In this document: in pieces, positions 1 through 46,187 of the stretch
How the letters are laid out: each line of letters begins with the position of its first letter
Position numbering within the stretch: position 1 is the first letter of the stretch
Virus record (IMG/VR): IMGVR_UViG_3300023179_004149
Span: 186,001 to 250,000 of that record
Direction: 5' to 3' (one strand)
DNA length: 64,000 nucleotides
Made by a program: the position numbers and the translations under genes
Notes under the pieces: generated by a model
Seen by the model: the letters and a program-made list of their open reading frames with translations, nothing else
Told to the model about the DNA's origin: nothing
Databases searched by the model: none

Positions 1-1
1 A

Positions 2-29859: not shown

Positions 29860-30840
29860 ATGAAAAAAGTAAATTTAAACGAACAAATCGTTAGAATGAG
29901 ATCCATTATGGGGCTCAATGAATCAAAAAGAACCGAAGCAGATGCCCAGAGAATACTCGCTGGCGTTGAAAACGCTGAGACTATAGTAAAACAATTCGCC
30001 CAGGGTGACCAATCAAAAGACCAAAAGAATATACCCATTATGGCATCCATATATAAAAATTTTAACTATACCGATGTTAAAAATATAGTGGATGTTATGA
30101 ACGATTATAATGATTTGGTTACTAAAAATAGGGTTAAACCTATTCAAATAGCCAAGGGTGTTTTATCAATAGGGGATAAATCCTTTAATGATTTTATTAG
30201 GTTTTCTGAATATATTCACGGTGAAAAGAACAAATATGCGGCACCTCAAAAAGGTTCAAGTGTTGATGCTGATTTCATCTCTAATAAAAAACCTATGTGG
30301 TCGGGTAATAATATCGATATCTATGAAGGTGATGAGGTTGGTAAATGTATCGCATACACCATGGGTGGTTTAACTGGTAGAGGTTATAGCTTCTGTATCG
30401 GTCAACCAGGTAATACCGTGTATCAATCTTACAGAGACACCAAAGTTTCATCATTCTATTTCGTGGTGGATAAAAACCACTTTAAAACCAATGAAGACGG
30501 TAGTGTAAATCTTGATGATCCATTACACATTGTGGTGTTCGATAATACACAACACGGTATAGAACTTACAGATGCTAACAACACAACTGGTAAAATCGCT
30601 GAACCATTTGGTACCAATTCAGATATATATGTTGATTATCTTAAAAATAAAGGCGTTCCAGTTGATCAACTCATCAATAAACCAAAAACCGATCAGGAAA
30701 GAAAAGAAGATGAATTGTTAGGTAGACCCAATCCAAGCCTTGAATGGTTTGTAAAATTACCGATTGATTTAAAATCAAAATACATAGGTAGAGGACACCA
30801 ATTAACAAACGATCAATTCGATTATCTCATAGGTAAATAA
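29860..30840 (+). CDS. Leader-tagged hypothetical protein
   Basis: Starts MKKVNLNEQIVRMRSIMGLNE. Contains GRGYSFCIG...YFVVD. Confidence 0.75.
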   Translation: MKKVNLNEQIVRMRSIMGLNESKRTEADAQRILAGVENAETIVKQFAQGDQSKDQKNIPIMASIYKNFNYTDVKNIVDVMNDYNDLVTKNRVKPIQIAKGVLSIGDKSFNDFIRFSEYIHGEKNKYAAPQKGSSVDADFISNKKPMWSGNNIDIYEGDEVGKCIAYTMGGLTGRGYSFCIGQPGNTVYQSYRDTKVSSFYFVVDKNHFKTNEDGSVNLDDPLHIVVFDNTQHGIELTDANNTTGKIAEPFGTNSDIYVDYLKNKGVPVDQLINKPKTDQERKEDELLGRPNPSLEWFVKLPIDLKSKYIGRGHQLTNDQFDYLIGK

Positions 30841-30841
30841 T

Positions 30842-31468
30842 ATGACACCACAAGATTTAATACAACAATATGTCAATACTGGTATCGGTATTCCCAGATA
30901 TCAATTTGATAGATTACCCAATGATTTAAAAAAATCATATATTAGAAAAATGTATATTTCATTGGATTATAAACCATATAATATTGTATATTATTATGGG
31001 GAGTTACCTGAACAAAAACAAATCGAAATTGTTAGTCACGATGGATTTTTAATTGAACACATCAACAACCCAACCGAAGCGGCACAATTGGCTGCCGTTA
31101 CAGAAGATGGTTTAGCTATTAAACATATTAAAAATCCATCGGAACAAGTACAAATTACTGCCGTTAAAAAAGATGGTATTGCAATTAAATATATTGACAA
31201 CCCATCCGAAGAGGTACAATTAACTGCCGTTAAAAAAGATTATCATAGTTTAAAACACATTATACAAAAGAGAATTATACCAAGTGAGGCGGTGCAATTG
31301 GCTGCCGTTAAAAAATTTGGCCCTATGATTGAATACATCTATAACCCATCCGAAACAGTACAATTAGCTGCCGTTAAAGAAAATCGTTTTGCTATTAAAT
31401 ATATTATAAAAAAGGGTATAAAACCGAGTGATGAGGTTTATAAAATTTTTAACCAATATGACAAATAA
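30842..31468 (+). CDS. Repeat protein (DUF4116-like ~22-aa repeats)
   Basis: NPSE.VQL.AVK.DG.AIKYI repeated about 5 times. Family name recalled from memory. Confidence 0.75.
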   Translation: MTPQDLIQQYVNTGIGIPRYQFDRLPNDLKKSYIRKMYISLDYKPYNIVYYYGELPEQKQIEIVSHDGFLIEHINNPTEAAQLAAVTEDGLAIKHIKNPSEQVQITAVKKDGIAIKYIDNPSEEVQLTAVKKDYHSLKHIIQKRIIPSEAVQLAAVKKFGPMIEYIYNPSETVQLAAVKENRFAIKYIIKKGIKPSDEVYKIFNQYDK

Positions 31469-32372
31469 AGATTTAATACACCAATATGTAAGTACAGGTA
31501 CTCAATTACCAGAACACCAATTGACTCAACTCAACACGAACCAATTGAAGAGTTATTTCAGACAACGTATTCTCGCTCAAGAATATGGCGTTGCTTTTCA
31601 ACAATATGAATATTTATTAGCCCCAGATGAAATAAAACCATTCATCATCAAATCAATCGCAAACGATGATGAATTTATTGATTTTTTGAATGGTAAGTCA
31701 CCAGAACGCTACGAAACGGAGGATAGGTATTATCATCGTTATGAACCAAAAATCGATTTCGCCGCCCTTATAAAAATGATATTAGAATCATACACTGAGG
31801 AAACACAAAATCCAAATCTATGGGCTATTAAAGAATTTATTGTTGGGATGGTTAGCACACCAGAAAATCAAAAAATTTATAATATTAAGGCCGACACCCA
31901 AGAGATATATAACATTATGTTGTCAACACCAGATTGTGGAAAAGATAAAACGGAAATGAATTATATATACTATATTTTAAAAACAACAGACACGCTAACC
32001 CCATTTAAAACATTTGCAAAAGATAAATTCGGGGCTTATTTGGAAATATTAAAAAATAAATCAAGTGATGATAAGTGGGAGAAGTTTGGAAACATATTCA
32101 AAACAACACCCATACCAAAACAAATAATAGAATTATCCAATACTTATGATTCTATGGGTGATGCTTTTTTATGGTATATGCCTAATGATGTGTTCTATGG
32201 GTTATTAGATTCTAAACACCCATTACATAGAATTAGCTTAATACCAGAGAAAAAAGTGAAACGGATGCTTCATAACGTATTTACTAAATACACCCAGGGT
32301 AACCCAGAAGAATACGCACAAGGTTTTACCAATCCTAAAGAAGTTATCCAAATTTATAATATGTATTATTAA
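31458..32372 (+). CDS. Hypothetical helical protein with N-terminal module shared with 30842
   Basis: MTNKDLIHQYVSTG vs MTPQDLIQQYVNTG. Confidence 0.7.
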   Translation: MTNKDLIHQYVSTGTQLPEHQLTQLNTNQLKSYFRQRILAQEYGVAFQQYEYLLAPDEIKPFIIKSIANDDEFIDFLNGKSPERYETEDRYYHRYEPKIDFAALIKMILESYTEETQNPNLWAIKEFIVGMVSTPENQKIYNIKADTQEIYNIMLSTPDCGKDKTEMNYIYYILKTTDTLTPFKTFAKDKFGAYLEILKNKSSDDKWEKFGNIFKTTPIPKQIIELSNTYDSMGDAFLWYMPNDVFYGLLDSKHPLHRISLIPEKKVKRMLHNVFTKYTQGNPEEYAQGFTNPKEVIQIYNMYY

Positions 32373-32691: not shown

Positions 32692-32720
32692 AAAAAAGCG
32701 GGTAAATTACCCGCTTTTTT
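32692..32720. terminator. Terminator-like hairpin
   Basis: aaaaaagcgggt-aaatt-acccgcttttt. Confidence 0.65.
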
Positions 32721-32748
32721 TATATATTTATATGTATAAAACATATAA

Positions 32749-35382
32749 ATGACAATGAAAATTGTAATTACTGAAGAGCAACTTCAAAAATTATCCGAAT
32801 ATATGATTTCAAATAAATTATTTGAGGGTGAGTTTAGGTTAGATACGACCAACACCACACAAATAGATCATATATTTAATATATTTAAACAATCATACGA
32901 GAAATCTACTGGTGGTTCCTGGGATAAATCTAAATTTTTATCAAGAGCTAGTGATTGGTTATTTTTTGGTGATATGGATGGTTTTATTGCGGTAAGACCT
33001 CAGAAATCAGGTTTATACAAGTTAGTGGGTGTGGCTGGCTCACCAAAAAGCATATTAAGCGCTTTGAGTGAAATCGAATCCAAAAACATACCAGTATGGG
33101 GTATGGTTACTCAAAACATACAGACAATGCTCCAAAAGAAAGGATTTATAACACCAACACCCGAGCAATTACAACTACTATACAAATCCATACCATCATC
33201 CGTATTCGGCGGAGCCGAAACTCAGCAGAATCCTGACGGTAGCTTAACGTTAAAATATAACGATGTTGGTGACGCAACAAAATTCTTTGTTGGTAACGAA
33301 ATGTATTTCAATGCAATGAAGACCATGTTTGGGGATAAATTCAACCTGGATGAGGCAAGATCAAACCCAGAAAAAAATCCGAGAGTTACATTCGGGATGT
33401 TCATGGATAATCTGGTAAATAAATATACATATGAAAATATATTTGTGTCATTTAGAAATGATTTACATGTAACAGATGTAAATGTTAATAACAAATACAG
33501 CACCCCAACTGGTGTTTATTCATACCCGCTTATTTCATATTTCAGAAACAAATACGATTTATCCAGGATGGATGAAGGTATGTTCAGAGAAGCATTCCCA
33601 TACCAATCTAAATTACCTTATATGTATTTTATTGTCTTAAAATCACATAACGGTATCCTGGATGAAAACACAACTTTTGAGCAGGTTGTTCCTTACGTTA
33701 AAAAGATAATGGATCTTTATGGTGACATTACACCCGTATATAAAACATGTGAATTATATTTGAATAAAGATTTTAAATCAACATATAATTCTTCCCCTTA
33801 TCATGAAGCACATAACTTTTGGTTATTTCTGTATGAGGTTGCGGCCTATATAACTAAGAATAAAAAACAACATGCGATTAATATTATTTGTACTAAAATA
33901 GGTGTTAATGGCTTTGTTGACTATAAAGGTAACGGATATATCCACCCGTCAGAGCCAAAACAAGCGGTGTTCTTTAGAATTAAACCAATTGCTGATGTTC
34001 TAATTTATAAAACCCAGATAACCAATTCTAATGATAAATTTGAATCATATTTAAAACAATTAAAACCAGGTGTGAAAAATCAGGTGTTGGTGAATAAATT
34101 ATTGGATTTTAACTTAATCTTCAATTACAATCAAGTTAATAGGATCGTTAATGCTTCAACGGATCAGCTCGATACGGCTTTAAGATTAATAATTAAAGAA
34201 GCTAATAAAATGGATCTGTCTAACTCATATATGGATAGTGTATTTTTCGCTGTTACAGAACCAGGTGGTAAAGATAAATTGGCCCTTGCTTTGCTCGATT
34301 CAAAATTAATCTACCACCATTCAATTGTTACGATGCTGGGACACGTATCGGACGAAAATCTTTTTGCTGAAAAACTATTAGAGAAATCGGAAAGTTTTAA
34401 TAATTACAAAATAGTAAACGAAATATTATTTTATTTAAAAGACCCGATTAAAGGGGCTAAAGATATTTTGGCTAAATTGGATCTTGAATTTGCCAGCGTG
34501 GAAATAATACAAATATTGATCGAACATGGTGGTGATGTATTAGCATATTTAATAACAAATAAAGTTTTTGGTAAAGAAAATTATCACGACTTCATTAATA
34601 CAATTCTTACACGTGTTAAAGATAATCTAAAATACTGTGTGTTCCTAATCAAAAAAGAAAATAAAAATATTAGTAGATTGACCTTAGATACTATTTTCTC
34701 ATGGGTTGACCTACCAACAGATAGAGCTAAATTAATGAAAATAGTTCTACAACTATTAGATTATCAACCAAGGCCAGCTATTTTAAAGTTTATATTAAGT
34801 AATAGTCCAGATTTATACAATGTTTTAAATGCGATCTACACCAAACAAAACGGATTTACCGATGAACAATACGTTATGTTATTTACCTCACAATATCTCA
34901 GCGGTAAAAACTATTTCTTTGTTCTTGATAAATGGCTCGAAAAGCTTAAAACTAAAGAAGGCCTTACTGCCGATGAAATATTCTTTAGTGGAACAATTGG
35001 AAATAAAATACGTGGTTTAAGTGACGAGGAAGGGTATGAGAACGTTAGAACAAAATTAATGGATACATACGTCGAATTGGTTAATAAAGTAATATCAAAA
35101 GTTGATGATCCAGTTTTGGTTTATCAAAAATTATTTAAACTCAATTTTATTTCAGCTGATAAATTATTGATCAAACTCATCACACAAATTAGTCCAGAAA
35201 ACGGAGAAATGTTAGCTAATGATATCCAGGATAAAAAGGGTGCTGATATGTTCAACCCTATTTATGCATTCTCTAATAAACTAACTGATGAATTAAATAA
35301 CGCAAAAACAAATAAAACATACGATATCCTAAAACGCATGGATAATGTGATCGAAGCCTTTTATAACGTAACCAATTTATAA
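32749..35382 (+). CDS. Multi-domain probable head-packaged protein
   Basis: Leader MKIVITEEQLQKLSE...LFE, internal NLDE|ARSNPE, a module ending GFVD.KG.GYIHPSEP.Q.VFF (possibly ART-like), and helical repeats. Confidence 0.7.
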   Translation: MTMKIVITEEQLQKLSEYMISNKLFEGEFRLDTTNTTQIDHIFNIFKQSYEKSTGGSWDKSKFLSRASDWLFFGDMDGFIAVRPQKSGLYKLVGVAGSPKSILSALSEIESKNIPVWGMVTQNIQTMLQKKGFITPTPEQLQLLYKSIPSSVFGGAETQQNPDGSLTLKYNDVGDATKFFVGNEMYFNAMKTMFGDKFNLDEARSNPEKNPRVTFGMFMDNLVNKYTYENIFVSFRNDLHVTDVNVNNKYSTPTGVYSYPLISYFRNKYDLSRMDEGMFREAFPYQSKLPYMYFIVLKSHNGILDENTTFEQVVPYVKKIMDLYGDITPVYKTCELYLNKDFKSTYNSSPYHEAHNFWLFLYEVAAYITKNKKQHAINIICTKIGVNGFVDYKGNGYIHPSEPKQAVFFRIKPIADVLIYKTQITNSNDKFESYLKQLKPGVKNQVLVNKLLDFNLIFNYNQVNRIVNASTDQLDTALRLIIKEANKMDLSNSYMDSVFFAVTEPGGKDKLALALLDSKLIYHHSIVTMLGHVSDENLFAEKLLEKSESFNNYKIVNEILFYLKDPIKGAKDILAKLDLEFASVEIIQILIEHGGDVLAYLITNKVFGKENYHDFINTILTRVKDNLKYCVFLIKKENKNISRLTLDTIFSWVDLPTDRAKLMKIVLQLLDYQPRPAILKFILSNSPDLYNVLNAIYTKQNGFTDEQYVMLFTSQYLSGKNYFFVLDKWLEKLKTKEGLTADEIFFSGTIGNKIRGLSDEEGYENVRTKLMDTYVELVNKVISKVDDPVLVYQKLFKLNFISADKLLIKLITQISPENGEMLANDIQDKKGADMFNPIYAFSNKLTDELNNAKTNKTYDILKRMDNVIEAFYNVTNL

Positions 35383-35383
35383 C

Positions 35384-36502
35384 ATGAAACTAAACGAACA
35401 AATATCAAGAATGAAATCCATCATGGGTATCAAAGAATCTATACGTGCTTCCGAAGCAACAAACCAAATAGATTCAATCTTAACCGTATTACACGGTAAG
35501 AGAAACCTGGCATTCATTACATTTGGTGATCTAAATCCAACAAATAAACAAACGGTGACTAAACTAATCAACTCAGACCCCTCTTTAAACTCAATACACG
35601 TCAAAAAGAATCCTCTTATGGGATTTGTGATATATAGAGAGGGACACGAGAAAGAAGCCCAGGAATTGGCTAATTTGGCCAATAGATACGGTGGTTATTT
35701 ATCCGTGGATGCAACCAAAGAAGATTCAATCAGAATCGGACAATTGCTCGATTACGATCCTCAAGATATTCAAGATTATATAAACAAACATTATGATGAA
35801 TATGGCGTGAATATTCGCACTGGTAACTTGTTTGAATTTGATTCACCCGATCAAAACCCATCCGCTATTTCAGTTCTGGGGTTGGATGAGGTGGCTAAAA
35901 CAGTGAGTGATTTACCTGCCGATACTGGCCTATACCACCAAACAAATATTAATATTGGAGACCAGTTTGTGTTATACTCAGCATCAGAAGATAAAGTCTA
36001 TGGTGGGATTAATATATATAATACAGATGAAGACCCTAATGTTTATATGGTGTCACGTGTGTCAGCCAACGAAAGTTTCGGCCCCCTATTGTATGATATG
36101 ATGTTATCATACGTATATCCTAAACCACTCATTCCAGATCGCAATACGATATCAAAAGATGCAATAAAGGTTTGGACATATTATTTCAATAATAGAAATG
36201 ATATAAAAAAGGAACCAATAGATATTGATGATCAATTATATAGCACAATCTATCCCTACGAACGAGAAATCGATCCCGATGTTCTAAAAGATCTACTTTT
36301 TGAACCCGAATACAAAGATACAATACACGAGTTGGATATCTATAATTCCAAATATATCGGAAAACCTTTGAATATACAACCGCTGTTAATTAACGCCAAT
36401 AAACAACTAAAATTAAAAAATGTAAACCTAAACGACTTAATCAGTAGATCGGGTAAGCATTACGACCAATCAAAAGGTGTACCCAGTGATTACGACATAT
36501 GA
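35384..36502 (+). CDS. Leader-tagged two-module protein, C-terminal GNAT-like
   Basis: MKLNEQISRMKSIMGIKE, internal LFE/LDE, VSRVSANESFGPLLYD...SKDAIKVW. Confidence 0.7.
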   Translation: MKLNEQISRMKSIMGIKESIRASEATNQIDSILTVLHGKRNLAFITFGDLNPTNKQTVTKLINSDPSLNSIHVKKNPLMGFVIYREGHEKEAQELANLANRYGGYLSVDATKEDSIRIGQLLDYDPQDIQDYINKHYDEYGVNIRTGNLFEFDSPDQNPSAISVLGLDEVAKTVSDLPADTGLYHQTNINIGDQFVLYSASEDKVYGGINIYNTDEDPNVYMVSRVSANESFGPLLYDMMLSYVYPKPLIPDRNTISKDAIKVWTYYFNNRNDIKKEPIDIDDQLYSTIYPYEREIDPDVLKDLLFEPEYKDTIHELDIYNSKYIGKPLNIQPLLINANKQLKLKNVNLNDLISRSGKHYDQSKGVPSDYDI

Positions 36503-36900
36503 AACTTAACGAACAAATAACAAAAATGAAATCTATGATGGGACTAAAAGAAAATATCCAATACTATGGAATTGTTAACCCAGAAGATAGAAATTGGCTC
36601 AGAATCAAAGGAAGAAAATCCTATAGCGGCGGCGAACTCTCACCAATCATCATAGATGGCGTTATGGTCGGTGGAATACATATAGATAAAATGTCGGGCG
36701 TGTGGGGTATCGATTATCTCGAAATTAAACCAGAATTCCAAAACAAAGGTACCCTAAGAAAAATCATATACGATCAAGCTGACGATGGTGTGGTTAAATT
36801 CATTAGCGCAAGCGATGAACTCCAACAAAAATTAACTACCTATGGTGAAGTAACAACCGATCCAAACACGGATATAACAACATTAACTATTACAAAATGA
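36499..36900 (+). CDS. Leader-tagged GNAT-like acetyltransferase
   Basis: MKLNEQITKMKSMMGLKE, IDYLEIKPEFQNKG (motif A-like). Confidence 0.7.
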   Translation: MKLNEQITKMKSMMGLKENIQYYGIVNPEDRNWLRIKGRKSYSGGELSPIIIDGVMVGGIHIDKMSGVWGIDYLEIKPEFQNKGTLRKIIYDQADDGVVKFISASDELQQKLTTYGEVTTDPNTDITTLTITK

Positions 36901-37517
36901 ACCTTAACGAACAATTAAATATAATGAAAACCATGATGGGTATCAAAGAAGATGATATAATCATCGATAAAAATCCCAACATTATGCACTTTTTTCATGG
37001 TGGTGACCTGGATGAGGTTAAACAAGACCTCATCCAAAGATCCGACAGACAAGTTCATGGCCCTGGCCTTTATCTTACAACAAATTGGGAGAGAGCAAAG
37101 AAATACGCCAAAGGCGGTAGAAAAATGTATATTGTGTCTGTGGAGAAAGGCAATAATCTCGATGATAAAGACATCGATATGGTTGCGCTCACACAATTCC
37201 TTAAACAAAACCTTTCACCCAAAAAAGTACAATATGTGCTCGATAGAGCCAATACCAGATTGCACGGTGGTAAAATACCAGCTTATATCGTTAATAACAT
37301 ACTTATAGATAGCGGATTCCTCAAATCAAATTTTTCATTAATGTGGAAAACATTCCTTATAGGTGTCGGCATTGATTACGTTCTTGATGAAACAGCTTTC
37401 GGCGGCGAAGGACAAATGATGGTATTATACAACACCAATAAAATAAAAAATATCAGGAGAATCATGCCAAATGATAAACTTCCAACATACGATTTAAGAC
37501 CATACAATGAAACTTAA
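36897..37517 (+). CDS. Leader-tagged ADP-ribosyltransferase-fold protein
   Basis: MNLNEQLNIMKTMMGIKE, FFHGG...GPGLYLTT...AKKYA. Confidence 0.7.
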   Translation: MNLNEQLNIMKTMMGIKEDDIIIDKNPNIMHFFHGGDLDEVKQDLIQRSDRQVHGPGLYLTTNWERAKKYAKGGRKMYIVSVEKGNNLDDKDIDMVALTQFLKQNLSPKKVQYVLDRANTRLHGGKIPAYIVNNILIDSGFLKSNFSLMWKTFLIGVGIDYVLDETAFGGEGQMMVLYNTNKIKNIRRIMPNDKLPTYDLRPYNET

Positions 37518-38409: not shown

Positions 38410-38410
38410 T

Positions 38411-38995: not shown

Positions 38996-39004
38996 CCCTG
39001 GGTT
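38983..39004. terminator. Bidirectional terminator
   Basis: aacccagg-tataa-cctgggtt between convergent genes. Confidence 0.75.
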
Positions 39005-39016: not shown

Positions 39017-41602
39017 TTACTCTAATGCGTTTAATACTTTTTCCTTTATTGTTTGAACACGATTATGATTCGATTTCGCCATCTTTTCAACAATCAAAGC
39101 CCTCAACCGATCAGCCACCTTAGGGTCCTTCAATCTATATACCTTTAATAACGAATCGTACTTACCCAATAAAGATTGATCCTCATCCGATATACCAATC
39201 AAATTATAAAACACATACCCATTAACCAATTGTAAAACCCTATCCTTACCAATTTGATCCTTTAGTTTGATGAACCGTTGAACAATCTCATCATCTGATT
39301 CCTTCTTAACATTTAATTCTTTATATAATGGTTCCAATTCAGCGCCAACCAAATCAAAATACATCTCCCTCAACTCAGCTGGAAACTTATTAACAACAAA
39401 CGGCGATATGGTCTTAACTATCGTATCGGTTAACACATGGACAATATGTTTGATAACATCAAACCCCTTGTTTTTGTTAAATAAACCAAATAACACATCG
39501 TATCGACCATGATTTATCAATTCCCTGACATAAATGTCTGTGTTCATGTTATTAATCGTTCTACCATGATACAAGACACCAAAGGCATCCTCAACAAGAA
39601 CATCCAAAGATTGTGACCAATATGATTCCATCCCCTTCAACACACCCCTTTCATTACGATACTTTAACTCATACTCCGTTAACCACCCAATCACAAAATT
39701 CTTAAACTTCTGATTGAACACCCCATAATAAGGCCCAGTAAAATGACAATAAATACCAGAGGCAAATCTACCAAGAGGATCCTTAATATTCCAATCACCC
39801 TCCTTTATTAAATAAAAAACAAAACTATTATCCCTTATCATATTGCCAACACCCGCACCATAACCTTCACCACCATCATCAATAGTTGATTTGATCATCG
39901 TTTGCTTTATATCCTTAATACCAGAAAGATTCTCACATGTGCTAAAATGATCACTATCTCCCATATTTGCAATATCATGCGAATGCCTGGATATAACAGC
40001 ATACATCTTACCTTCACCACCAGCCCTGGTCATCGAATCCAAATAACTCGTGTATCTTTTCAATAAACCAACATCATACTTTTGCAATAACTTGGTTAAT
40101 TTAACCTCCTGGTTACTCTTCTCATCCTTCACCTTGTTACCGTCAAAATCAACCAACACAAAACCATTATCGGCAATAACACGATCAATATCATGCCTTA
40201 ACTTATCACTAATATTAACATCCAAATTTAAAGTCGGTGTTTTCCTGGTCGGCGTAATCATCTTCCCAGTATCGAGATCATAATATAAACGATATACATT
40301 CTTACCAAATAAATTATCCATATTAGCATCAAAACGCTTTTGATAGGCCCTGGCTTGCTTGGATAAATTCAACTCAATGGCCTCACCCAACCACATCACC
40401 CCCCTCATGCGGGAAACCTCTTCATTTAATTTATTTAACGTCTCTTCTGCAAATTCTAATGACTCTTTCTCATTATCATCAAGCTCTCTATTAATACCAC
40501 TTATAACTTTTCGTATTATATCCTCTTCCCACCTAAACGCATACAACACATACGATAACAAACTCTCACCACGCCTAATAATTCTCTTATCATATATTAT
40601 TTTCATTAAGTTATAATTAATTATCATCTTAATGTTTTTATCCGTTATGTTATTGGCCATATCAGGGTCTTCAATTAATTTGGTATGTAATGATTGCAAA
40701 TAAACTTTCTTTAACTCATCTCGCAACCCATCAAAATCAAAAAACCAATTATAATACCTCTTAACCAAAACCTTGCTACGTTCCAAAGGCATCGAGTTTA
40801 ACTCATCCATCTGTTTCTTATCATAAATTACATCATTTGATAATAACCTGTTTTCTAATGAGTCGTGTGTTCCAATAACACCTTTCTTATTTATATTAAT
40901 AAATAAGGTGTTTATATCAACAGACTTCATATCACCATCAATCTTATTAAGATCATAGATAACCGAACCATGTAACGTATTATCCCAATCCCAAACACCT
41001 GAAACATTAACACCATTATAGCCATTCCACTCCATAATCCTGGTGGAAAATGAAGCCGAACTACTGGCTTGCGTTTTATTATACATCGAATTAAAATCAC
41101 TCGCGGCTTGTTTTAACATATTGATAAACTCACGATACTTTGGAACCTTTAAACCCAAATAACTTAAATTATTAACAACAACCAAATACCGCTTGCTTAT
41201 ATCGCCATGCCCATATAAAAAACTATAAAATATATCATTCAACTCCTTCAATGTGTTAAATAACCACTTACCTTGTTCATTGCTCTTTACTCGATATAAA
41301 TTTTTATAGAAATCCATATTAACCCTATAAACACTATCACCAACCTGAATCAACCCAGACATATCCTTAAAAGCAGATCCATATTTTTTATCATAATCAG
41401 CTTTATCCCTTAACTTATAAGTTGAAAAATACATACCCGAACCAAAGTGACCCGTGCCCCTACCTTGCATTCTCCATATGTTATCAGAACCATACGGTTT
41501 TAAATTAGATAAATTAACACTACCCGAATGATAGTTGTAATCGGCCTCAATTAATAAAACCATTTTTTTTATTTGTTGTAACTCAGAAAGTAACTTATCC
41601 AT
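39017..41602 (-). CDS. Fused two-cassette leader-tagged polyprotein, N-module ART-like
   Basis: N-leader LLSELQQIKKMV.LIE, YHSG...GHFGSGMYFST, and a second internal leader LNKLNEEVSRMRGVMWLGE at 40391-40438. Confidence 0.75.
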   Translation of the reverse strand: MDKLLSELQQIKKMVLLIEADYNYHSGSVNLSNLKPYGSDNIWRMQGRGTGHFGSGMYFSTYKLRDKADYDKKYGSAFKDMSGLIQVGDSVYRVNMDFYKNLYRVKSNEQGKWLFNTLKELNDIFYSFLYGHGDISKRYLVVVNNLSYLGLKVPKYREFINMLKQAASDFNSMYNKTQASSSASFSTRIMEWNGYNGVNVSGVWDWDNTLHGSVIYDLNKIDGDMKSVDINTLFININKKGVIGTHDSLENRLLSNDVIYDKKQMDELNSMPLERSKVLVKRYYNWFFDFDGLRDELKKVYLQSLHTKLIEDPDMANNITDKNIKMIINYNLMKIIYDKRIIRRGESLLSYVLYAFRWEEDIIRKVISGINRELDDNEKESLEFAEETLNKLNEEVSRMRGVMWLGEAIELNLSKQARAYQKRFDANMDNLFGKNVYRLYYDLDTGKMITPTRKTPTLNLDVNISDKLRHDIDRVIADNGFVLVDFDGNKVKDEKSNQEVKLTKLLQKYDVGLLKRYTSYLDSMTRAGGEGKMYAVISRHSHDIANMGDSDHFSTCENLSGIKDIKQTMIKSTIDDGGEGYGAGVGNMIRDNSFVFYLIKEGDWNIKDPLGRFASGIYCHFTGPYYGVFNQKFKNFVIGWLTEYELKYRNERGVLKGMESYWSQSLDVLVEDAFGVLYHGRTINNMNTDIYVRELINHGRYDVLFGLFNKNKGFDVIKHIVHVLTDTIVKTISPFVVNKFPAELREMYFDLVGAELEPLYKELNVKKESDDEIVQRFIKLKDQIGKDRVLQLVNGYVFYNLIGISDEDQSLLGKYDSLLKVYRLKDPKVADRLRALIVEKMAKSNHNRVQTIKEKVLNALE

Positions 41603-41605: not shown

Positions 41606-42850
41606 CTATTTTAATTTATCAAACTCTCTATCATAAGAAGATTTTTCATCCAACGGATTCTTTAGATGATTGGTTACATAATCCTCAAATCGGAAAAAAG
41701 CACCATTAATTTTATTCAAAAGATCTTCTGAAATATCTGGCGTTATTTTTAAAGGTTCATTAACCTCATTCAAACCCATAACCTTTTTTATTTGATTAAG
41801 CCCCTCATCTAACATATCTGAACTAATACCTAAAGTATTTAAATACTTATTAAAATCCATATCATACACTTCATACCATTTAATGTTGTTACTCAAATAT
41901 AAAGAATAACTATCTGGTAAATAGGTCATCAAAAACCTAGCATCATCAATATCCATGTTAAAATCCATTATAACATACACATACCCCAAACCAGCATAAT
42001 CTTCCCAATAATTCTCACTACCAACTTGTGCAAAACACCAATTACTATAACAACCCAATTGCTGCATAGCCTCATAATCATTAACCTTGATTACCAGAAC
42101 ATCGTTTTTATCATATACCAAATCAGCATCAAGATTCGGCAATAAATCCAAAACATGTTTACGACCCGTTTCAGCGCCATCACCAATATAACTCATGGTC
42201 TTACTCAAATGATCAAAACCCGCAACAATATCTTTAAAACTCCTACCACTACGAAATAGTTTAGGCAACATCTCATCGTGTTTTTTCTTAGGTAAAGCCT
42301 GTAATATTTTATTAATAACCCTCAACCCCTCATACACTTTTTTAAAATTATATGAAATAAACTGTTGGTAATTCGGGTCGGCTGTATCAATGTTATATAT
42401 ATATTCTTTAATTGGTTTCATCATATTACGCTTAATAATATCTGATAATTTACCCCAACTTTTAACCAAATAACTCCTTTCCTTTAACATCTCATATAAA
42501 GACATTACATGAAATCTATTATCCTGGGTTTCATATTTGTAGTCGGTTAAATTACCTGGAACAGGAAATAATTGTTTATCATACACTCTTACTAAATCGT
42601 AAAAATCCGCAACAATATCCATATTCCTCTCAGTATATTTACTCTGGTCAGATTCAAACCTATTCATCTGATAATAAAAATCAGTAACCAACTTCGTAAA
42701 ATTATTACCGTTTGTAAGATCAACAATAGCTTCCTTGACACGAGGCTCTAACTTACCCGAATTAAAATAAACTTTATCGGCTAATTGAACATTCTCATTC
42801 AAACCCATCATTACCCTCATACGGAAAACTTGCTCGTTTAATTTATTCAT
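41606..42850 (-). CDS. Leader-tagged hypothetical protein
   Basis: MNKLNEQVFRMRVMMGLNE, LGCYSNWCF module, internal LDEGLNQIKKVMGLNE near the C-terminus. Confidence 0.75.
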   Translation of the reverse strand: MNKLNEQVFRMRVMMGLNENVQLADKVYFNSGKLEPRVKEAIVDLTNGNNFTKLVTDFYYQMNRFESDQSKYTERNMDIVADFYDLVRVYDKQLFPVPGNLTDYKYETQDNRFHVMSLYEMLKERSYLVKSWGKLSDIIKRNMMKPIKEYIYNIDTADPNYQQFISYNFKKVYEGLRVINKILQALPKKKHDEMLPKLFRSGRSFKDIVAGFDHLSKTMSYIGDGAETGRKHVLDLLPNLDADLVYDKNDVLVIKVNDYEAMQQLGCYSNWCFAQVGSENYWEDYAGLGYVYVIMDFNMDIDDARFLMTYLPDSYSLYLSNNIKWYEVYDMDFNKYLNTLGISSDMLDEGLNQIKKVMGLNEVNEPLKITPDISEDLLNKINGAFFRFEDYVTNHLKNPLDEKSSYDREFDKLK

Positions 42851-43453
42851 TTATACTCCACTAAAACTTAATTGGTTATTATCATTTATATATAAATCAA
42901 CTGACCCCATATCACGTGATGCTTTCATTAATATATTCTCGTCCTCATCATCATAACCCCTATCAAAAAAACCAGCACCGTGACCATTACGTGTCAACCA
43001 AAAGTCATGACCAAGTTGTTCAGCACCAAACTCATTAATCGCCCTATGAATTAAATCCTCACCACATAACTGAATGAATTTCTTAATACCTATATAAGCA
43101 TCAATTAACGAATCTGACTCAATATCTTCACGACTGAATGATACAATACCCTTATTATTCAACTGCGATGTTAATCTAATTAATTTATCCAATTCGGTAT
43201 CATCCTCATCCTCATCATCGTCGTCATAAACACTATCATCACCTTGTTCATCTCTCAAAGATTCCTCCTCAGTCCATAATGCCGCTTCAATATACCCCAT
43301 CAATATCTTATTTATAATATCGGTAGATATATCAGATTCGTCTAATACACTACCATCATCCTGAATATCCTTGGCAAATTGATACCTACCCGAATTTTCA
43401 GATATACCCATTATCGCCCTCATGCGGGACACTTGTTCATTTAATTTATTCAT
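42851..43453 (-). CDS. Leader-tagged hypothetical protein (GHDFWLTRNGHGAGF motif)
   Basis: Start reassigned to MNKLNEQVSRMRAIMGISE at 43453. Confidence 0.75.
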   Translation of the reverse strand: MNKLNEQVSRMRAIMGISENSGRYQFAKDIQDDGSVLDESDISTDIINKILMGYIEAALWTEEESLRDEQGDDSVYDDDDEDEDDTELDKLIRLTSQLNNKGIVSFSREDIESDSLIDAYIGIKKFIQLCGEDLIHRAINEFGAEQLGHDFWLTRNGHGAGFFDRGYDDEDENILMKASRDMGSVDLYINDNNQLSFSGV

Positions 43454-43466
43454 AACGATATCAATT

Positions 43467-44081
43467 TTATTTTGTTTCATAATTATCTGGTACCAGGTTA
43501 CTAAGATGCTCCACAAACGTATCAAACTCGAAAAATTTGGGATTGTATTTATATGGTACCTCTTTACCATCTGGACGTAAAACAACAACTTTATAATCAC
43601 TAAATTTACTATGAGTATCTCTAAATCCAGATATAATATCCACAATATAGGAATAATGATTCGTATCAGTTAATATAATTCTGAATTTGATCCTATCTGG
43701 TGTATTCTCGAATATATTAACCTTCACCACAACAGCTTTAACGTCACCAATATTTATTGTTTTACCCACATATGAATTAATTAGATCCTCTGAAAATATA
43801 CCAGATACATACCAGTGCTTATTCCCTGATTTATCAAGAATTGGTTTAAAATCACCAAACTCCAAATCTATAGGTTCACCAGAAACATCAACATCCGCAA
43901 CATCCGATTTTTTAAAATTACCAAATCTGCCAACTTTATCATCTGGCTTTAACTTCTTCCTGGTAGTGTCAAGATTCTTGGTCTTATTCCAATACCAATC
44001 AGAATCATCCCAAGATTCACTTAACCCCATCATCCGCCTGATGTTTTGAATCTCCTCATTTAATGTTTGTTTCTGTTTCAT
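43467..44081 (-). CDS. Leader-tagged hypothetical protein
   Basis: MKQKQTLNEEIQNIRRMMGLSE. Confidence 0.75.
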   Translation of the reverse strand: MKQKQTLNEEIQNIRRMMGLSESWDDSDWYWNKTKNLDTTRKKLKPDDKVGRFGNFKKSDVADVDVSGEPIDLEFGDFKPILDKSGNKHWYVSGIFSEDLINSYVGKTINIGDVKAVVVKVNIFENTPDRIKFRIILTDTNHYSYIVDIISGFRDTHSKFSDYKVVVLRPDGKEVPYKYNPKFFEFDTFVEHLSNLVPDNYETK

Positions 44082-44082
44082 A

Positions 44083-44190
44083 TTACTTTAATTCACTTAT
44101 GATTCTTTGATTTTCCCAGATACGTTTCAAATTCTTTAATACGTTCTTTCTAATCTTATTCTTTTTTTGCTTGGGTTTTGCTTTTGCCAT
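44083..44190 (-). CDS. Small basic peptide (35 aa)
   Basis: MAKAKPKQKKNKIRKNVLKNLKRIWENQRIISELK, TATTTATG upstream, stop 1 nt before the next ATG. Confidence 0.55.
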   Translation of the reverse strand: MAKAKPKQKKNKIRKNVLKNLKRIWENQRIISELK

Positions 44191-44235
44191 AATATAACTT
44201 TTACTACTCATAAATATAAAAAAATCCACAATAAA

Positions 44236-44267
44236 TTTGCCTATGCACCAAAATATTCGTATATTTG
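44236..44267 (+). promoter_or_regulatory. Bacteroidota-type promoter
   Basis: TTTG-N20-TATATTTG, ATG at 44275. Confidence 0.75.
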
Positions 44268-44274
44268 CTCCGTT

Positions 44275-45627
44275 ATGGCACGGTACATCGAAATAGAAAG
44301 AAAAGAAGCGGAAAAAGAAAAGGCTTACCAAGAAGCCCTGGATCGCCACGCACTGGAACGTAAAGTAAACAGAGCTAAAACAGCACAACTAGTTGAATGG
44401 ATCTGCTCAAACAAACTCAAACCAACCAACTACCTCTATACTTCCAATAACTTCGATCTTTGGAGCACCATGGAAGTAACCGCCACATTATGCCGCAAAT
44501 CCGATAAATTCAAAAAAATCGCAACTCATATAGCAGAATGGGCCCCTAACTTCTATGAAAATAGGGATAACATACTAGCCCTCAGAGGTATCTCAGAAGT
44601 TTATTCAGAAAGACTCAGAAACATAGAAGATTGGGAACCAAAAAAACTTAATCACAAATCTATACTCATCGAAATCCTAAACCACCTATTCACCAATTAC
44701 CAATCACCCCAATTCCTCATTAACGGATTTATCAACAATAACCATGAGTCAATGCTGCTCTTTATACACCTGGGACAAGGTAAGTCCATGAAAACATGGC
44801 CATTTATCCCAGAATTTAATATACCCAAAAAAGCACTACACCACCTCTACACCACACCAAACTATTGCACATATAACGAAGCTTTCAGAAGAGCACAAAT
44901 TATTCACCTCGGCGGAGATGATAAACTCTTCCGACTCCTTATGTCAACAAAACTCGAACACCACACCAATAATATTAATAAACACAGAGCCAAAGACGAA
45001 CCATTCTGGGAATCGGTTATCAAATTCTTTATCGAACACCAAATGATGAACCCAGATAAAGTAGGTGAAATTATCGACTATATCTACGACCAAAAATTTG
45101 CCCTTAAAAGAAAACCAGGACCTAACGGTACAACGGTGAACGAACCAGATCAACCCAACTTTACCATGAAAGGTAGAACACCAATGTCACTGATCCAACA
45201 GTCAGATGATTGGCACTACTTTGTCGCCATGAATAAAAAACGTGAGGAAGACCCTAAAGAATGGGAACCAATCGATCTACCTGATTGGGAATGGAAAGAA
45301 GGTGAAGAAAATAACTTCGCTAAAATGAGATACAACATCACCCAGCTCACAAAAACCAAAGAACTTATCGCAGAAGGTAATAAAATGCACCACTGTGTCG
45401 CCACTTATGCCAGCTCATGTATTAAGAAATGGTGCTCCATCTTCTCGTTCCGTGTAACCAACCACACCCAGGGCAAATTCGATGAACCAGAAGTAACCCT
45501 GGAAATCAGATCTAAAACCATAGTACAGGCCAGAGGTAAATACAACAGAACACCTCACCCACACTATATGCAAATGATCAAATCATGGGCCGATATTAAC
45601 GGAGTGAAATTCTCAAATTATATGTAA
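44275..45627 (+). CDS. PcfJ-like domain protein
   Basis: C-terminal L..EG.KMHHCVATY...IFSFR...TLEI....IVQARGKYN pattern. Family name recalled from memory. Confidence 0.8.
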   Translation: MARYIEIERKEAEKEKAYQEALDRHALERKVNRAKTAQLVEWICSNKLKPTNYLYTSNNFDLWSTMEVTATLCRKSDKFKKIATHIAEWAPNFYENRDNILALRGISEVYSERLRNIEDWEPKKLNHKSILIEILNHLFTNYQSPQFLINGFINNNHESMLLFIHLGQGKSMKTWPFIPEFNIPKKALHHLYTTPNYCTYNEAFRRAQIIHLGGDDKLFRLLMSTKLEHHTNNINKHRAKDEPFWESVIKFFIEHQMMNPDKVGEIIDYIYDQKFALKRKPGPNGTTVNEPDQPNFTMKGRTPMSLIQQSDDWHYFVAMNKKREEDPKEWEPIDLPDWEWKEGEENNFAKMRYNITQLTKTKELIAEGNKMHHCVATYASSCIKKWCSIFSFRVTNHTQGKFDEPEVTLEIRSKTIVQARGKYNRTPHPHYMQMIKSWADINGVKFSNYM

Positions 45628-45653
45628 AAATGAACCTATTTATAATAAAAAAT

Positions 45654-46187
45654 ATGGTACTTACAGAACAAATAAATAGGATTAAAGAAATGATGGGATT
45701 AGATCCCAAAAAACGATTTGAGTATAAACCCATCACATATGAAGAATTTGATGACGCACTATCAGATATCTCCACATTAAACCTGGAAGACGATCAACTG
45801 GGTATACCTGAATTTAATCAGAATACCGATAATTTTTTATTACGAATCGATGACATCGACCTCTATATAAAAAATAGACAACAGTTACCAGAAAGTGGCC
45901 CCTATGAATTATTAATTGATAATAACGATGGCGATACCATAGGTTTCATTCGCGGAACCAAATTTAATAACATCCTTTCATTTAATCTCGTATATATTGC
46001 ACCAGAAGAAAGAGGTAATGGCATCGGTACCAGTATCTACCAATACTTTTTGAACCACGGTTATATAATGAAGACCGATAAGGAAATTAGTGATTCCACT
46101 CATTCCATATATACTAACCTCGCAAAATCTGAATATACGCCCATTATGTTCGCCGATCATAGAGTGGGACTGATTAAATCATCATAA
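45654..46187 (+). CDS. Leader-tagged GNAT-like acetyltransferase
   Basis: MVLTEQINRIKEMMGL, LVYIAPEERGNGIGTSIY (motif A), TATTTATA upstream. Confidence 0.8.
   Translation: MVLTEQINRIKEMMGLDPKKRFEYKPITYEEFDDALSDISTLNLEDDQLGIPEFNQNTDNFLLRIDDIDLYIKNRQQLPESGPYELLIDNNDGDTIGFIRGTKFNNILSFNLVYIAPEERGNGIGTSIYQYFLNHGYIMKTDKEISDSTHSIYTNLAKSEYTPIMFADHRVGLIKSS

Follow-up and report, generated by a model that had tools for sequence, protein, structure and literature searches.

A shared N-terminal peptide resembling a capsid address tag on otherwise unrelated proteins of a giant T4-like phage

The window analyzed here (a stretch of 64,000 nucleotides within a 320,934-bp T4-like contig) contains, between positions 29860 and 46187, a tightly packed array of genes in four transcription units. 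Ten of the ORFs in this array begin, 2–6 residues after the initiating Met, with the same 16-residue peptide, and translate to M-x(1-5)-LNEQIxRMKxxMG(L/I)xE or close variants of it. An eleventh ORF, encoding an 861-aa protein, has a degenerate N-terminal copy of this leader and, in addition, an internal copy. The observation made in the preliminary description, that about 11 genes share this N-terminus, is therefore confirmed, although the internal copy had been missed. The same description stated that the proteins share nothing obvious downstream of the leader; this is nearly right, with two exceptions, as the cargos of the genes starting at 35384 and 42850 are homologous (family F0) and those at 36897 and 38411 both hit ART-type families, the former only weakly. 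The features of the locus are given in Table 1.

Table 1. Genes and other features of the window. Leader coordinates run 5' to 3' along the coding strand; "|" marks the predicted cleavage site.
Position	Strand	Length	Leader or motif	Description
29860..30840	+	326 aa	nt 29875-29922, ending GLNE|S (35.5 bits)	Leader-tagged gene; cargo unknown, no family hit
35384..36502	+	372 aa	nt 35390-35437, ending GIKE|S	Leader-tagged gene; cargo family F0
36499..36900	+	133 aa	nt 36505-36552, ending GLKE|N	Leader-tagged gene; cargo unknown, no relatives among the loci
36897..37517	+	206 aa	nt 36903-36950, ending GIKE|D	Leader-tagged gene; weak DUF3990 (ART-like) hit (E 7.8e-4, below the curated cutoff)
37507..38409	+	300 aa	nt 37513-37569, shifted site GLQTINE|Y	Leader-tagged gene; cargo family F4, found on 4 contigs
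38411..38995	+	194 aa	nt 38417-38464, ending DINE|A	Leader-tagged predicted ADP-ribosyltransferase (ART-PolyVal, 1.6e-9; H27, Y55, D161; H and Y invariant, D near-invariant); model pLDDT 92.9, helix 3-13, coil 14-22, fold from 23
38983..39004	.			Bidirectional terminator-like hairpin between the convergent + operon (ends 38995) and - operon (ends 39017)
39017..41602	-	861 aa	Degenerate N-terminal leader ending LIE|A; internal leader at aa 393-408, nt 40429-40382 (11.8 bits)	Two-module protein; C-terminal module with relatives in jumbo phages (homology begins at aa 398-405); ART-like motif in the N-terminal half not significant
41606..42850	-	414 aa	nt 42841-42794, ending GLNE|N; weak internal leader at aa 349-362 before a short C-terminal module	Leader-tagged gene; F0 cargo of unknown fold; model helix 2-13, coil 14-19, folded 20-352; no PDB match
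42851..43453	-	200 aa	nt 43444-43397, ending GISE|N	Leader-tagged gene; cargo matches phrog_1915 (unknown function)
43467..44081	-	204 aa	Variant leader LNEEIQNIRRMMGLSE|S, nt 44063-44016 (32.2 bits)	Leader-tagged gene
45654..46187	+	177 aa	Variant leader LTEQINRIKEMMGL, nt 45660-45701 (34.7 bits); no canonical L/I-x-E after the leader	Leader-tagged GNAT acetyltransferase
30842..32372	+			Two untagged paralogous genes inside the array (30842-31468 has DUF4116; 31458-32372 has no hit); a DUF4116 protein carries the leader on another contig
32692..32720	+	13 pairs		Terminator-like hairpin separating operon 29860-32372 from operon 32749-38995
32749..35382	+	877 aa	Different N-terminal peptide (class E: IVITEEQLQ...LSE|Y)	Heads the second operon; the same class sits on ART homologues of other lineages
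44272..45627	+			Untagged PcfJ-like protein in the array (PF14284, 6.2e-16)
25037..26008	-	323 aa	C-terminal copy of the tag, ...ALNE|QIARMKQILRY, nt 25081-25040 (13.5 bits)	Low-complexity composition (K/P/T-rich N-terminal half; acidic, Met/His-rich C-terminal part); a NUDIX protein at another locus (L002) likewise ends with the tag
23..1069	+		Sites LNE|S and INE|S; C-terminal tail NPQLERMLDMINKMK, nt 1022-1066, in register with the leader core	Scaffold (gp22-position) protein; 5' end outside the window
1101..2756	+		Predicted propeptide site MLNE|S at aa 57-61, nt 1269-1283	gp23-like major capsid protein (PF07068)
8475..10934				ClpB-like AAA+ protein (large Clp-type ATPase)

We used a profile HMM of the leader to determine how distinctive it is within the window. 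The ten tagged ORFs scored 30–36 bits, whereas the next best hit in the six-frame translation scored 13.5 bits. The strict DNA pattern occurs 7 times on the whole contig, and all 7 copies lie in the array. Codons for identical residues matched in 53% of pairs compared with the 46% expected from codon usage, and mean nucleotide identity was 64%, so the repeat is a conserved peptide rather than repeated DNA. Conservation stops sharply after the Glu, with an information content of 1.2–5.3 bits per position over positions 1–16 and below 0.75 bits from position 17. We also examined the claim that several of these transcription units follow a late-type TATTTATA motif. This claim is not supported: there are 15 copies in the window against 14.4 expected, and only two lie before genes of the array (at 32725, ahead of an untagged-class gene, and at 45637). 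Sigma-70-like sites were not enriched either, and late expression could therefore not be shown.

The genome is T4-like. Just upstream, the contig encodes an intein-containing gp21-type prohead protease (Peptidase_S77, 2.6e-13), Portal_T4, a scaffold and a gp23-like capsid protein, and a 190-kb relative carries both the array and an S77 protease. The preliminary description had noted that the leader is bracketed by the (L/I)xE motif also found at the predicted capsid cleavage site, MLNE|S. This motif is present and is conserved as (L/I)NE(S/A), at capsid residue ∼58–61, in 20 related capsid proteins, and it also occurs in the scaffold and portal tails. In the window's proteins [LI]NE[SA] occurs 11 times against 1.4 expected. 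Among 78 distinct leaders, 70 have an L/I-x-E with the Glu at leader position 16, 17 or 19, with Asn at P2 in 41 and Ser at P1' in 22. The leader most often ends in (L/I)NE|S, the same as the capsid and scaffold sites. However, the GNAT cargo and its relatives lack a canonical L/I-x-E after the leader.

We next looked at the distribution of the leader in public data, where it marks at least 224 protein clusters among 1.84 billion proteins. The leader was N-terminal in 92 of 98 distinct hits in the loci and in 136 of the best 150 of the 224 representative clusters, and two-copy leader-cargo-leader-cargo proteins also exist. The cargos fell into 35 families among 74 ORFs and 71 among 105 representatives, giving at least 71 unrelated cargo families; the cargos range from 83 to 663 aa. 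The recognizable domains are ART-PolyVal, DUF3990, GNAT, NUDIX, P-loop kinase, ParB_N and PG_binding, but about 95% of the 105 representatives have no recognizable enzymatic domain. In the window itself, 3–4 of the 11 cargos have such a domain, so the claim that the tag loads many enzymes is only partly true. Gene order in the arrays differs between relatives.

Two further results had not been anticipated in the preliminary description. The leader core (N.Qh.RMK.hMG) recurs at the C-terminal tails of the scaffold and, in sister lineages, of the protease. Leader and scaffold-tail profiles aligned in register with a score of 20.5 against 5.8 ± 3.1 for shuffled controls, and 0 of 5000 shuffles reached it, although this similarity test was post hoc. 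Exact RMK..MG occurs 61 times in 842,841 translated residues, of which 38 are in N-terminal leaders and 23 in the C-terminal tails of scaffolds or S77 proteases, with none internal. However, in the window's own subclade the protease tail lacks RMKxxMG and the scaffold tail (NPQLERMLDMINKMK) is a weaker match. The second result is that homologues of the ART and F0 cargos in other lineages carry other short leaders; of 81 such extensions, 71 contain h-x-E (43 ± 4 in shuffles), with the Glu lying 8–11 residues before the core.

AlphaFold models of two cargos (those starting at 38411 and 42850) predict a helix (residues 2/3–13), then a coil that contains the putative cut site, then the globular domain. 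The leader is not significantly amphipathic by hydrophobic moment. The best solved-structure matches of the ART cargo are a cyanophage pre-ejectosome chain and the anti-CRISPR ART AcrIF11.

Taken together, these results lead us to favor, with moderate confidence, the reading that the 16–19-residue leader is a prohead (capsid-core) targeting propeptide, the functional counterpart of the T4 capsid targeting sequence (CTS) in a distant, uncultured, jumbo T4-like lineage. In this view the helical core of the leader would dock the newly made protein into the assembling scaffold core, using the site that binds the similar C-terminal tails of the scaffold protein and, in sister lineages, of the prohead protease. 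Once the shell closes, the gp21-type protease would cut after the Glu of the (L/I)xE that ends the leader, the same P3-P1' pattern as at the predicted capsid-propeptide and scaffold sites, and so free the cargo inside the head. The internal leaders of two-module proteins would act as processing sites, and in the rare C-terminally tagged proteins the LNE at the start of the tag would be the cut. The cargo, which includes an H-Y-D ADP-ribosyltransferase related to AcrIF11, a GNAT and elsewhere NUDIX hydrolases and P-loop kinases but is mostly of unknown function, would then leave the head with the DNA and act on the host before phage genes are expressed. Of these elements, the organization of the array is shown directly, and the modularity of the cargo is shown by comparison, since cassettes are gained, lost, fused and reordered between relatives and the same cargo domains carry other, lineage-specific leaders elsewhere; docking, presence in the virion, cleavage and ejection are all inferred, as the phage is uncultured and there is no experimental evidence. 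The earlier interpretation, a modular plug-in packaging tag that is clipped at maturation and delivers many enzymes with the DNA before any phage transcription, is partly supported: several independent computational lines support its central idea, a modular, protease-removable head-packaging tag analogous to the T4 CTS. The scaffold-mimicry step rests mainly on sister lineages, for which co-occurrence with leader arrays on the same genome was not shown. Also against this reading, the mature cargos are mostly acidic (pI 4–6), unlike the basic T4 internal proteins, and the ART homologue of the cultured jumbo phage CBB is not in that phage's published virion proteome tables.

Other explanations are less likely. 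The leader could target proteins to the prohead and be cleaved without the cargo being injected, in which case the tagged proteins would be internal or structural head components, e.g. an inner-body-like mass, DNA-condensing or pressure-modulating proteins, or assembly factors degraded after use. The scarcity of recognizable enzymatic domains and the low-complexity, repeat-rich composition of one tagged protein (25037–26008) are in keeping with this, as is the fact that in T4 many core proteins with L/I-x-E-terminated N-termini are scaffold parts rather than effectors (PMC9026906). However, ART-PolyVal, GNAT, NUDIX and kinase cargos make little sense as structural parts, the ART cargo keeps its H-Y-D triad and resembles AcrIF11 and a pre-ejectosome chain, and high cassette turnover between relatives is more typical of conflict genes than of structural genes; we consider this reading unlikely. 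Somewhat less likely still is that the tag is recognized by something other than the capsid, either as a degron or adaptor signal for the ClpB-like AAA+ protein encoded in the window or as a coiled-coil handle that gathers the proteins into a cytoplasmic complex. The tag is a short predicted helix and there is no direct evidence of packaging, but this reading does not explain why the same core motif ends the scaffold and prohead-protease proteins and occurs nowhere else in the translated residues searched, or why the tag ends in the protease's consensus, matching the capsid propeptide site.

Two further possibilities appear very unlikely. The conserved 5' segment might act at the nucleic-acid level, as a shared translation-initiation or repressor-binding region or as a recombination cassette for gene shuffling, with no function for the peptide itself. 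In T-even phages the conserved CTS-coding segment has reportedly been discussed as a site that eases shuffling of internal-protein genes, and gene order in the arrays does differ between relatives. However, synonymous sites are close to saturation, the peptide is conserved across contigs with different codons, internal and C-terminal copies exist, and conservation ends exactly at the Glu codon. The least likely reading is that the genes are one fast-diverging paralogue family in which only the N-terminus has stayed recognizable, so that there would be no modular tag. Although some cargos are related, as described above, the cargos include distinct folds and families (ART, GNAT, NUDIX, P-loop kinase, ParB_N), and the same ART and F0 domains occur with entirely different leaders, or with none, in other lineages.

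The closest known system is the T4 CTS of the internal proteins IPI/IPII/IPIII, together with the propeptides of Alt, gp24, gp67 and gp68, all of which are removed by the gp21 prohead protease. T4 gp21 cuts after L/I-x-E, and the first 10 residues of IPIII suffice for packaging (PMC9026906). As in T4, a short N-terminal peptide ending in the gp21 consensus is shared by otherwise unrelated, fast-evolving proteins, the genome has the same head module (gp20 portal, gp21-family S77 protease, gp22-position scaffold and gp23-family capsid protein with a ∼60-residue propeptide), and one cargo is a predicted ADP-ribosyltransferase, as Alt is. The preliminary description held that the T4 analogue covers only a few proteins, which undersells the literature: diverse T-even internal proteins are already stated to share only the CTS (PMC3012670), and the CTS has been suggested to be an evolutionary device for loading various proteins (PMC9026906). 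The system described here looks like a much larger and differently spelled version of this device. The leader has no sequence similarity to the T4 CTS as read from the T4 record and is 16–19 residues long rather than 10; there are 10–11 tagged genes in one 16-kb array, against three IPs scattered in T4, and at least 71 cargo families are known. The cargos are mostly acidic and 13–98 kDa rather than small basic proteins, and the ART is of the H-Y-D PolyVal clade, not the R-S-E Alt clade. The tag resembles the C-terminal tail of the scaffold or protease, whereas in T4 the CTS resembles the scaffold's N-terminus, if anything, and tandem and C-terminal uses of the tag occur.

The cargos also overlap in domain vocabulary (ART-PolyVal, DUF3990, GNAT, NUDIX-type, ParB_N, peptidoglycan-binding) with the polyvalent proteins of phages and conjugative elements (Iyer et al. 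2017, PMC5512222). Delivery with the invading DNA is predicted for both, and some cargos are fused in relatives (F0+NUDIX, F0+ART). However, the domains here are mostly unbundled into single-domain genes, each with its own address tag, instead of 2–15 domains in one polypeptide, so that the multidomain architecture that defines polyvalent proteins is absent. In phiKZ-like giant phages (phiKZ, 201phi2-1, SPN3US) many head-internal proteins are processed after Glu by a diverged gp21 homologue, and a large protein mass is ejected with the DNA (PMC9026906, PMC5694885, PMC7411985). The propeptides of those proteins are long and are not known to form a single shared short tag; the cleavage logos differ, and the capsid lineage differs from the gp23 family here. 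Finally, AcrIF11 (PDB 6KYF) and the cyanophage A4 pre-ejectosome chain 9K3A_B are the two best structural matches of the predicted ART cargo encoded at 38411 (E 5.7e-5 and 1.8e-5, probability 1.00), although sequence identity is 11–15% and TM-scores are modest (0.40–0.53). AcrIF11 is an ADP-ribosyltransferase that disables a CRISPR complex (bioRxiv 10.1101/2024.08.26.609590), and 9K3A is a packaged, ejected protein complex (PMC12002296).

The preliminary description had reported about eleven ORFs that share a short N-terminal leader and little else, and this observation holds. Translation of the ten starts at 29860+, 35384+, 36499+, 36897+, 37507+, 38411+, 42850-, 43453-, 44081- and 45654+ gave M-x(1-5)-LNEQIxRMKxxMG(L/I)xE or close variants in each case. 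An HMM of the 18-residue segment scored these ten at 30-36 bits, and the next best hit in the six-frame translation of the 64-kb window scored 13.5 bits. The weaker hits were informative, as they comprised an internal copy in the 861-aa ORF (in addition to its degenerate N-terminus), a weak internal copy in the 414-aa ORF, and a C-terminal copy at the very end of a 323-aa low-complexity ORF. The leader is conserved as a peptide, not as DNA: codons for identical residues agree in 53% of pairs against 46% expected from codon usage, and mean nucleotide identity is 64%. Information content is 1.2-5.3 bits per position for positions 1-16 and falls below 0.75 bits from position 17 on, i.e. the conservation cliff falls after the Glu. 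The genes are packed start-to-stop in four transcription units, with two terminator-like hairpins. The preliminary description had also claimed that several of these units follow a late-type promoter motif, and this does not hold. TATTTATA and TATAAATA each occur 15 times against 14.4 expected, only two copies of TATTTATA precede genes of the array, and sigma-70-like sites number 67 against 88.6 in shuffles; no promoter could be assigned.

Coordinates of the leader-tagged ORFs and of other features of the window and of related loci
Sequence	Coordinates	Strand	Feature
window	start 29860	+	leader-tagged ORF
window	start 35384	+	leader-tagged ORF
window	start 36499	+	leader-tagged ORF
window	start 36897	+	leader-tagged ORF, sub-threshold DUF3990 hit
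window	start 37507	+	leader-tagged ORF
window	start 38411	+	leader-tagged predicted ADP-ribosyltransferase (ART-PolyVal)
window	39017-41602	-	861-aa ORF, degenerate N-terminal leader and internal copy at aa 393-408
window	41606-42850	-	leader-tagged 414-aa ORF (F0 cargo), weak internal copy at aa 349-362
window	start 43453	-	leader-tagged ORF
window	start 44081	-	leader-tagged ORF
window	start 45654	+	leader-tagged GNAT
window	32692-32720		terminator-like hairpin
window	38983-39004		terminator-like hairpin
window	25037-26008	-	323-aa low-complexity (repeat-rich, charged) protein, tag at the extreme C-terminus
L002	~1520-2657	-	380-aa NUDIX protein, tag at the extreme C-terminus
window	32749-35382	+	877-aa ORF with class E N-terminal peptide
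window	20322-20894	-	190-aa ORF with class E N-terminal peptide
L008	~8605		class E N-terminal peptide
window	14958-15965		ORF of unknown function with (L/I)NE(S/A) sites
window	15943-18273		ORF of unknown function with (L/I)NE(S/A) sites
window	19269-19592		ORF of unknown function with (L/I)NE(S/A) sites
window	19604-20239		ORF of unknown function with (L/I)NE(S/A) sites
window	4261-10934	-	two large glycosyltransferase-domain proteins (717 and 661 aa) and an 819-aa ClpB/ClpA-like double-AAA protein
window	27375-29575	-	sensor histidine kinase (GAF-PAS-HATPase_c, 586 aa) and a neighboring 145-aa ORF
L096 (own contig, upstream of the window)	1-8253		terminase, AAA protein and prohead protease, each interrupted by inteins or homing-endonuclease domains
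L013 (190-kb relative)	~6439-6498	-	solitary 20-codon leader remnant (leader followed by a stop)
L017	13918-14668	-	divergent leader-like N-terminus
L086	~14113	-	divergent leader-like N-terminus
L040/L042			divergent leader-like N-terminus

The window is part of a 320,934-bp contig that is known under three names. It starts inside the scaffold gene, which is followed by a gp23-family capsid gene. The 10 kb upstream on the same contig hold an intein-containing terminase fragment, Portal_T4, an intein-containing AAA protein, a Peptidase_S77 (T4 gp21-type) prohead protease interrupted by an intein (E 2.6e-13), the 421-aa scaffold and Gp23; phrog_138 was also matched. The genome therefore encodes the gp21-family protease, the scaffold core and the gp23-family capsid protein that a T4-type packaging system requires. 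In the 190-kb relative the portal also carries an intein or homing-endonuclease domain (locus L017). Glycosyltransferase-domain proteins and the Clp-like double-AAA protein sit just downstream of the capsid gene, and a phage-encoded sensor histidine kinase lies directly beside the array, next to an ORF whose N-terminus reads like a receiver domain.

The nearest deposited phages share only 42-45% capsid-protein identity, and searches of deposited phages returned no carrier of the leader. Megablast of the array, tblastn of a 25-aa leader and tblastn of the 414-aa cargo all found nothing. A positive control with another 25-aa N-terminus found itself at 1e-9, so the negative result is meaningful.

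We then asked how widespread and how specific the leader is. A degenerate DNA pattern found it on 12 viral contigs and in 57 metagenome stretches, and all seven strict-pattern matches on the whole of the window's contig fall in this array. Among 98 distinct HMM hits in those loci, 92 lie 2-9 residues after a Met. The four hits scored as internal sit within 14 residues of the preceding stop with no Met upstream and, judging from position alone, are probably alternative starts. The 74 complete tagged ORFs fall into 35 unrelated cargo families. A profile search of 1.84 billion representative proteins gave 224 clusters at E <= 0.001; of the best 150, 136 have the leader within the first 12 residues, and seven have a second, internal leader, i.e. 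a tandem leader-cargo-leader-cargo layout. The 105 representatives of 100 aa or more form 71 families. Recognisable domains were few: ART-PolyVal, DUF3990, GNAT, NUDIX, P-loop kinases, ParB_N, PG_binding, EF-hand and DUF4116. As a negative control, 80 capsid-centred loci of relatives (1.1 Mb) gave no hit of 12 bits or more with the first HMM. A motif equally common on cytoplasmic replication and metabolic proteins had been set beforehand as evidence against a packaging tag, but no replication or metabolic protein of the window carries the leader, including the thymidylate synthase, helicase, Clp-like ATPase, glycosyltransferases and sensor kinase. In the 190-kb relative, a leader remnant lies just downstream of a tagged gene and looks like a cassette that lost its cargo. 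Divergent leader-like N-termini (for example ...LDRQRKLMGLNE|T) occur on genes just downstream of the capsid gene in relatives (loci L017, L086 and L040/L042); at that position the window has a peptidase-like gene and an SLT-domain gene without a leader.

The end of the leader resembles a prohead-protease site. T4 gp21 cuts after Glu in L/I-x-E, the first ten residues of IPIII are sufficient for packaging, and residues 8 and 10 govern processing (PMC9026906). Here, 70 of 78 distinct leaders have L/I-x-E with the Glu at leader position 16, 17 or 19; P3 is Leu in 43 and Ile in 25, P2 is Asn in 41, and P1' is Ser in 22. Variants that lack the site at position 16 have it 1-3 residues later (for example GLQTINE|Y). 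The same (L/I)NE(S/A) is conserved at residue ~58-61 of the capsid protein in 20 relatives, which is where a T4-like ~60-residue propeptide would end (T4 removes 65 residues, PMC9546572). It also occurs three times in the scaffold and once in the portal tail, and in the window's proteins [LI]NE[SA] occurs 11 times against 1.4 expected. Four ORFs of unknown function contain (L/I)NE(S/A) sites and two of these have leader-like N-termini (for example ...VLNEVNEIRRHLKMQPLTE|S); they may be further head-internal proteins, although the HMM does not detect them. In the two proteins that carry the tag at the extreme C-terminus, i.e. the 323-aa protein of the window and the 380-aa NUDIX protein of locus L002, the tag is preceded by LNE, which could serve as the cut site for C-terminal tags. 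AlphaFold models of two cargos place the leader in a helix (residues 2/3-13), the predicted cut site in a coil (14-19/22), and the globular domain after it. The hydrophobic moment of the leader was not above that of shuffles, so the idea of an amphipathic helix was dropped and we claim only a predicted helix. Nor does the leader read as a Sec/Tat-type signal peptide, which has an N-terminal positively charged region followed by a hydrophobic core of about 10 or more residues: by direct inspection of the sequence it alternates polar and charged residues (N, E, Q, R, K, S) with single hydrophobic residues and has no hydrophobic run.

The analysis also revealed a link that is absent from the preliminary description. 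In 81 related loci the scaffold protein ends, just after an L-x-E|S site, with a conserved tail whose consensus is ENPQFLRMKDLMSK; the window's own tail is NPQLERMLDMINKMK. This tail aligns in register with the leader consensus LNEQISRMKSMMGLNE, with N2, Q4, R7, M8, K9 and M12 identical. The profile-profile score is 20.5 against 5.8 +/- 3.1 for column shuffles, and 0 of 5000 shuffles reach it, although the test was made after the similarity had been noticed. The exact string RMK..MG occurs 61 times in 842,841 translated residues of all loci: 38 are N-terminal leaders, 23 lie within 12 residues of a C-terminus, and none is internal. All 23 C-terminal cases are scaffold tails or tails of 227-aa ORFs that are S77 protease homologues (E ~1e-60). 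One peptide motif is thus shared by three non-homologous classes, i.e. cargo (N-terminal), scaffold (C-terminal) and protease (C-terminal), two of which are known prohead-core components in T4. This suggests a common docking site. However, the window's own subclade has a diverged protease tail without the motif, co-occurrence of motif-bearing scaffolds and leader arrays on one genome is shown only for the window's contig and the 190-kb relative, and the leader's hydrophobic moment is unremarkable. In T4 itself, the N-termini of gp22, gp67, gp68, gp21, gp24 and the IPs, read from the T4 record, all carry an h-x-E within the first 6-20 residues (within 10 in all but IPI). The IP tag (IPII/IPIII) resembles the scaffold's N-terminus rather than its C-terminus, a similarity that is too short to test statistically.

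The same cargo domains carry other leaders elsewhere. The ART-PolyVal cargo (38411) has 120 homologues of about 190 aa whose core starts at (Y/F)HG(S/T). Their N-terminal 12-45 residues fall into discrete classes: A, this leader; B, of the LIKxLLRESLLPE type, which is also internal in two-domain proteins; C and D; and E, of the IIITExQL type. Some homologues have no extension. Of 81 distinct extensions, 71 contain h-x-E (43 +/- 4 in shuffles, 0 of 2000), and the last Glu lies 8-11 residues before the core. The F0 cargo (42850) behaves in the same way, and relatives fuse it to NUDIX or ART domains. Class E (h-I-h-T-E-E/S-Q-h-Q..., ending in h-x-E) is a second kind of shared N-terminal peptide: it heads the 877-aa and 190-aa ORFs of the window, is also seen in locus L008, and precedes ART-PolyVal domains in other lineages (proteins P0073, P0083, P0094, P0095, P0100 and P0103). 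A search of deposited phages for a class B leader found none. Array gene order differs between relatives through cassette insertion, permutation and fusion.

Of the cargos in the window, 38411 is an H-Y-D ADP-ribosyltransferase by sequence and predicted fold. It hits PF18760 at 1.6e-9 and has the H (strand 1), Y (strand 2), D (strand 5) active-site configuration; H27 and Y55 are invariant and D161 is at least 90% conserved in 60 homologues. The AF2 model has pLDDT 92.9, and Foldseek hits AcrIF11, PARP and tankyrase catalytic domains. Its best solved-structure matches are a chain of the cyanophage A4 pre-ejectosome (9K3A_B) and the anti-CRISPR ART AcrIF11 (6KYF). The paper describing 9K3A does not mention ADP-ribosylation, so an ART-like domain in that ejection protein may have gone unremarked. 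The cargo of 45654 is a GNAT. The C-terminal module of the 861-aa ORF has relatives in other jumbo phages, and the homology starts right after the internal leader; an ART assignment of its N-terminal half was rejected, as the hhalign probability is 2%. The AF2 model of the F0 cargo has pLDDT 71.5 (80-95 in the core), but no PDB match reaches E 0.001. NCBIfam and PHROGs gave almost nothing on the cargos, and no function could be assigned to the remaining ones. Mature cargos would be 13-98 kDa and mostly acidic. We also looked for virion evidence through a cultured relative, phage CBB: its ART homologue, CBB_455, appears only in the annotation table and not in the proteome, and its N-terminus is unique in that genome.

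The best-supported reading of these results, in which we have moderate confidence, is a T4-CTS-like, protease-removed prohead-targeting tag. The interpretation in the preliminary description, i.e. a modular tag that loads enzymes into the head, is clipped at maturation and delivers them with the DNA, is supported in part. The sequence analysis itself shows the conserved peptide, its N-terminal placement on many unrelated cargos, the protease-type motif at its end, the T4-type head genes and the motif shared with scaffold and protease tails. Presence of the tagged proteins in the mature head, cleavage after the Glu and sufficiency of the tag for packaging are inferred, the phage being uncultured; docking at a common site and catalysis by the ART cargo are inferred as well. 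Delivery into the host is a further inference, which rests on the cargo types and on what is known for T4 Alt and the IPs and for polyvalent proteins (PMC5512222, PMC7824862).

A more far-reaching reading, which is not excluded but which we regard as tentative, is that the leader is a portable copy of the peptide by which the scaffold and the prohead protease themselves anchor in the prohead (core RMKxxMG). In this view cargo would enter the head by scaffold mimicry at one docking site, and each jumbo or T4-like lineage would have its own code, i.e. class A here and classes B-E on the same ART and F0 domains elsewhere, all ending in h-x-E about 10 residues before the fold. Effector domains would then be re-addressed between phages simply by swapping leaders. 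If so, short N-terminal address codes would be a general, unrecognised way to read out the packaged or injected proteome of uncultured phages, and would flag hundreds of proteins of unknown function as early-acting host-takeover or counter-defence factors.

If the prohead-targeting reading is right, a sequence motif alone identifies the proteins that this phage lineage carries in its head and delivers with its DNA, a set that is normally accessible only by virion proteomics of cultured phages. It would cover at least 224 clusters and at least 71 families, about 95% of them of unknown function, and would be a concentrated list of candidate host-takeover and anti-defence factors that already includes an AcrIF11-like predicted ADP-ribosyltransferase. 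It also gives a concrete hypothesis for how such tags work, which has not been settled even for T4, namely mimicry of the scaffold or protease tail, and it offers a natural, swappable address tag for loading proteins into non-model phage capsids.

The concept of such a tag is known. What is new here is the tag family itself (a text search of the literature consulted for the leader strings found nothing), its scale, the unbundled polyvalent-type cargo, the kinship of the tag with scaffold and protease tails, and the lineage-specific leader classes on the same cargo. The reading would extend the T4 CTS principle to distant, uncultured jumbo phages at a much larger scale, and would link it to the domain repertoire of polyvalent proteins. 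The leader shows no sequence homology to the T4 CTS: the ipI, ipII and ipIII N-termini read from NC_000866 share only the terminal h-x-E with it, and length and sequence differ. Compared with polyvalent proteins (Iyer et al. 2017), the characteristic domain vocabulary is present, as the ART-PolyVal cargo conserves H27, Y55 and D161, and DUF3990, GNAT, NUDIX and ParB_N occur among tagged proteins. However, polyvalent proteins carry 2-15 effector domains in one polypeptide, whereas the tagged proteins are mostly single-domain and 83-663 aa long, and only a few have two modules (the 861-aa ORF and the tagged proteins P0271, P0277, P0121 and others).
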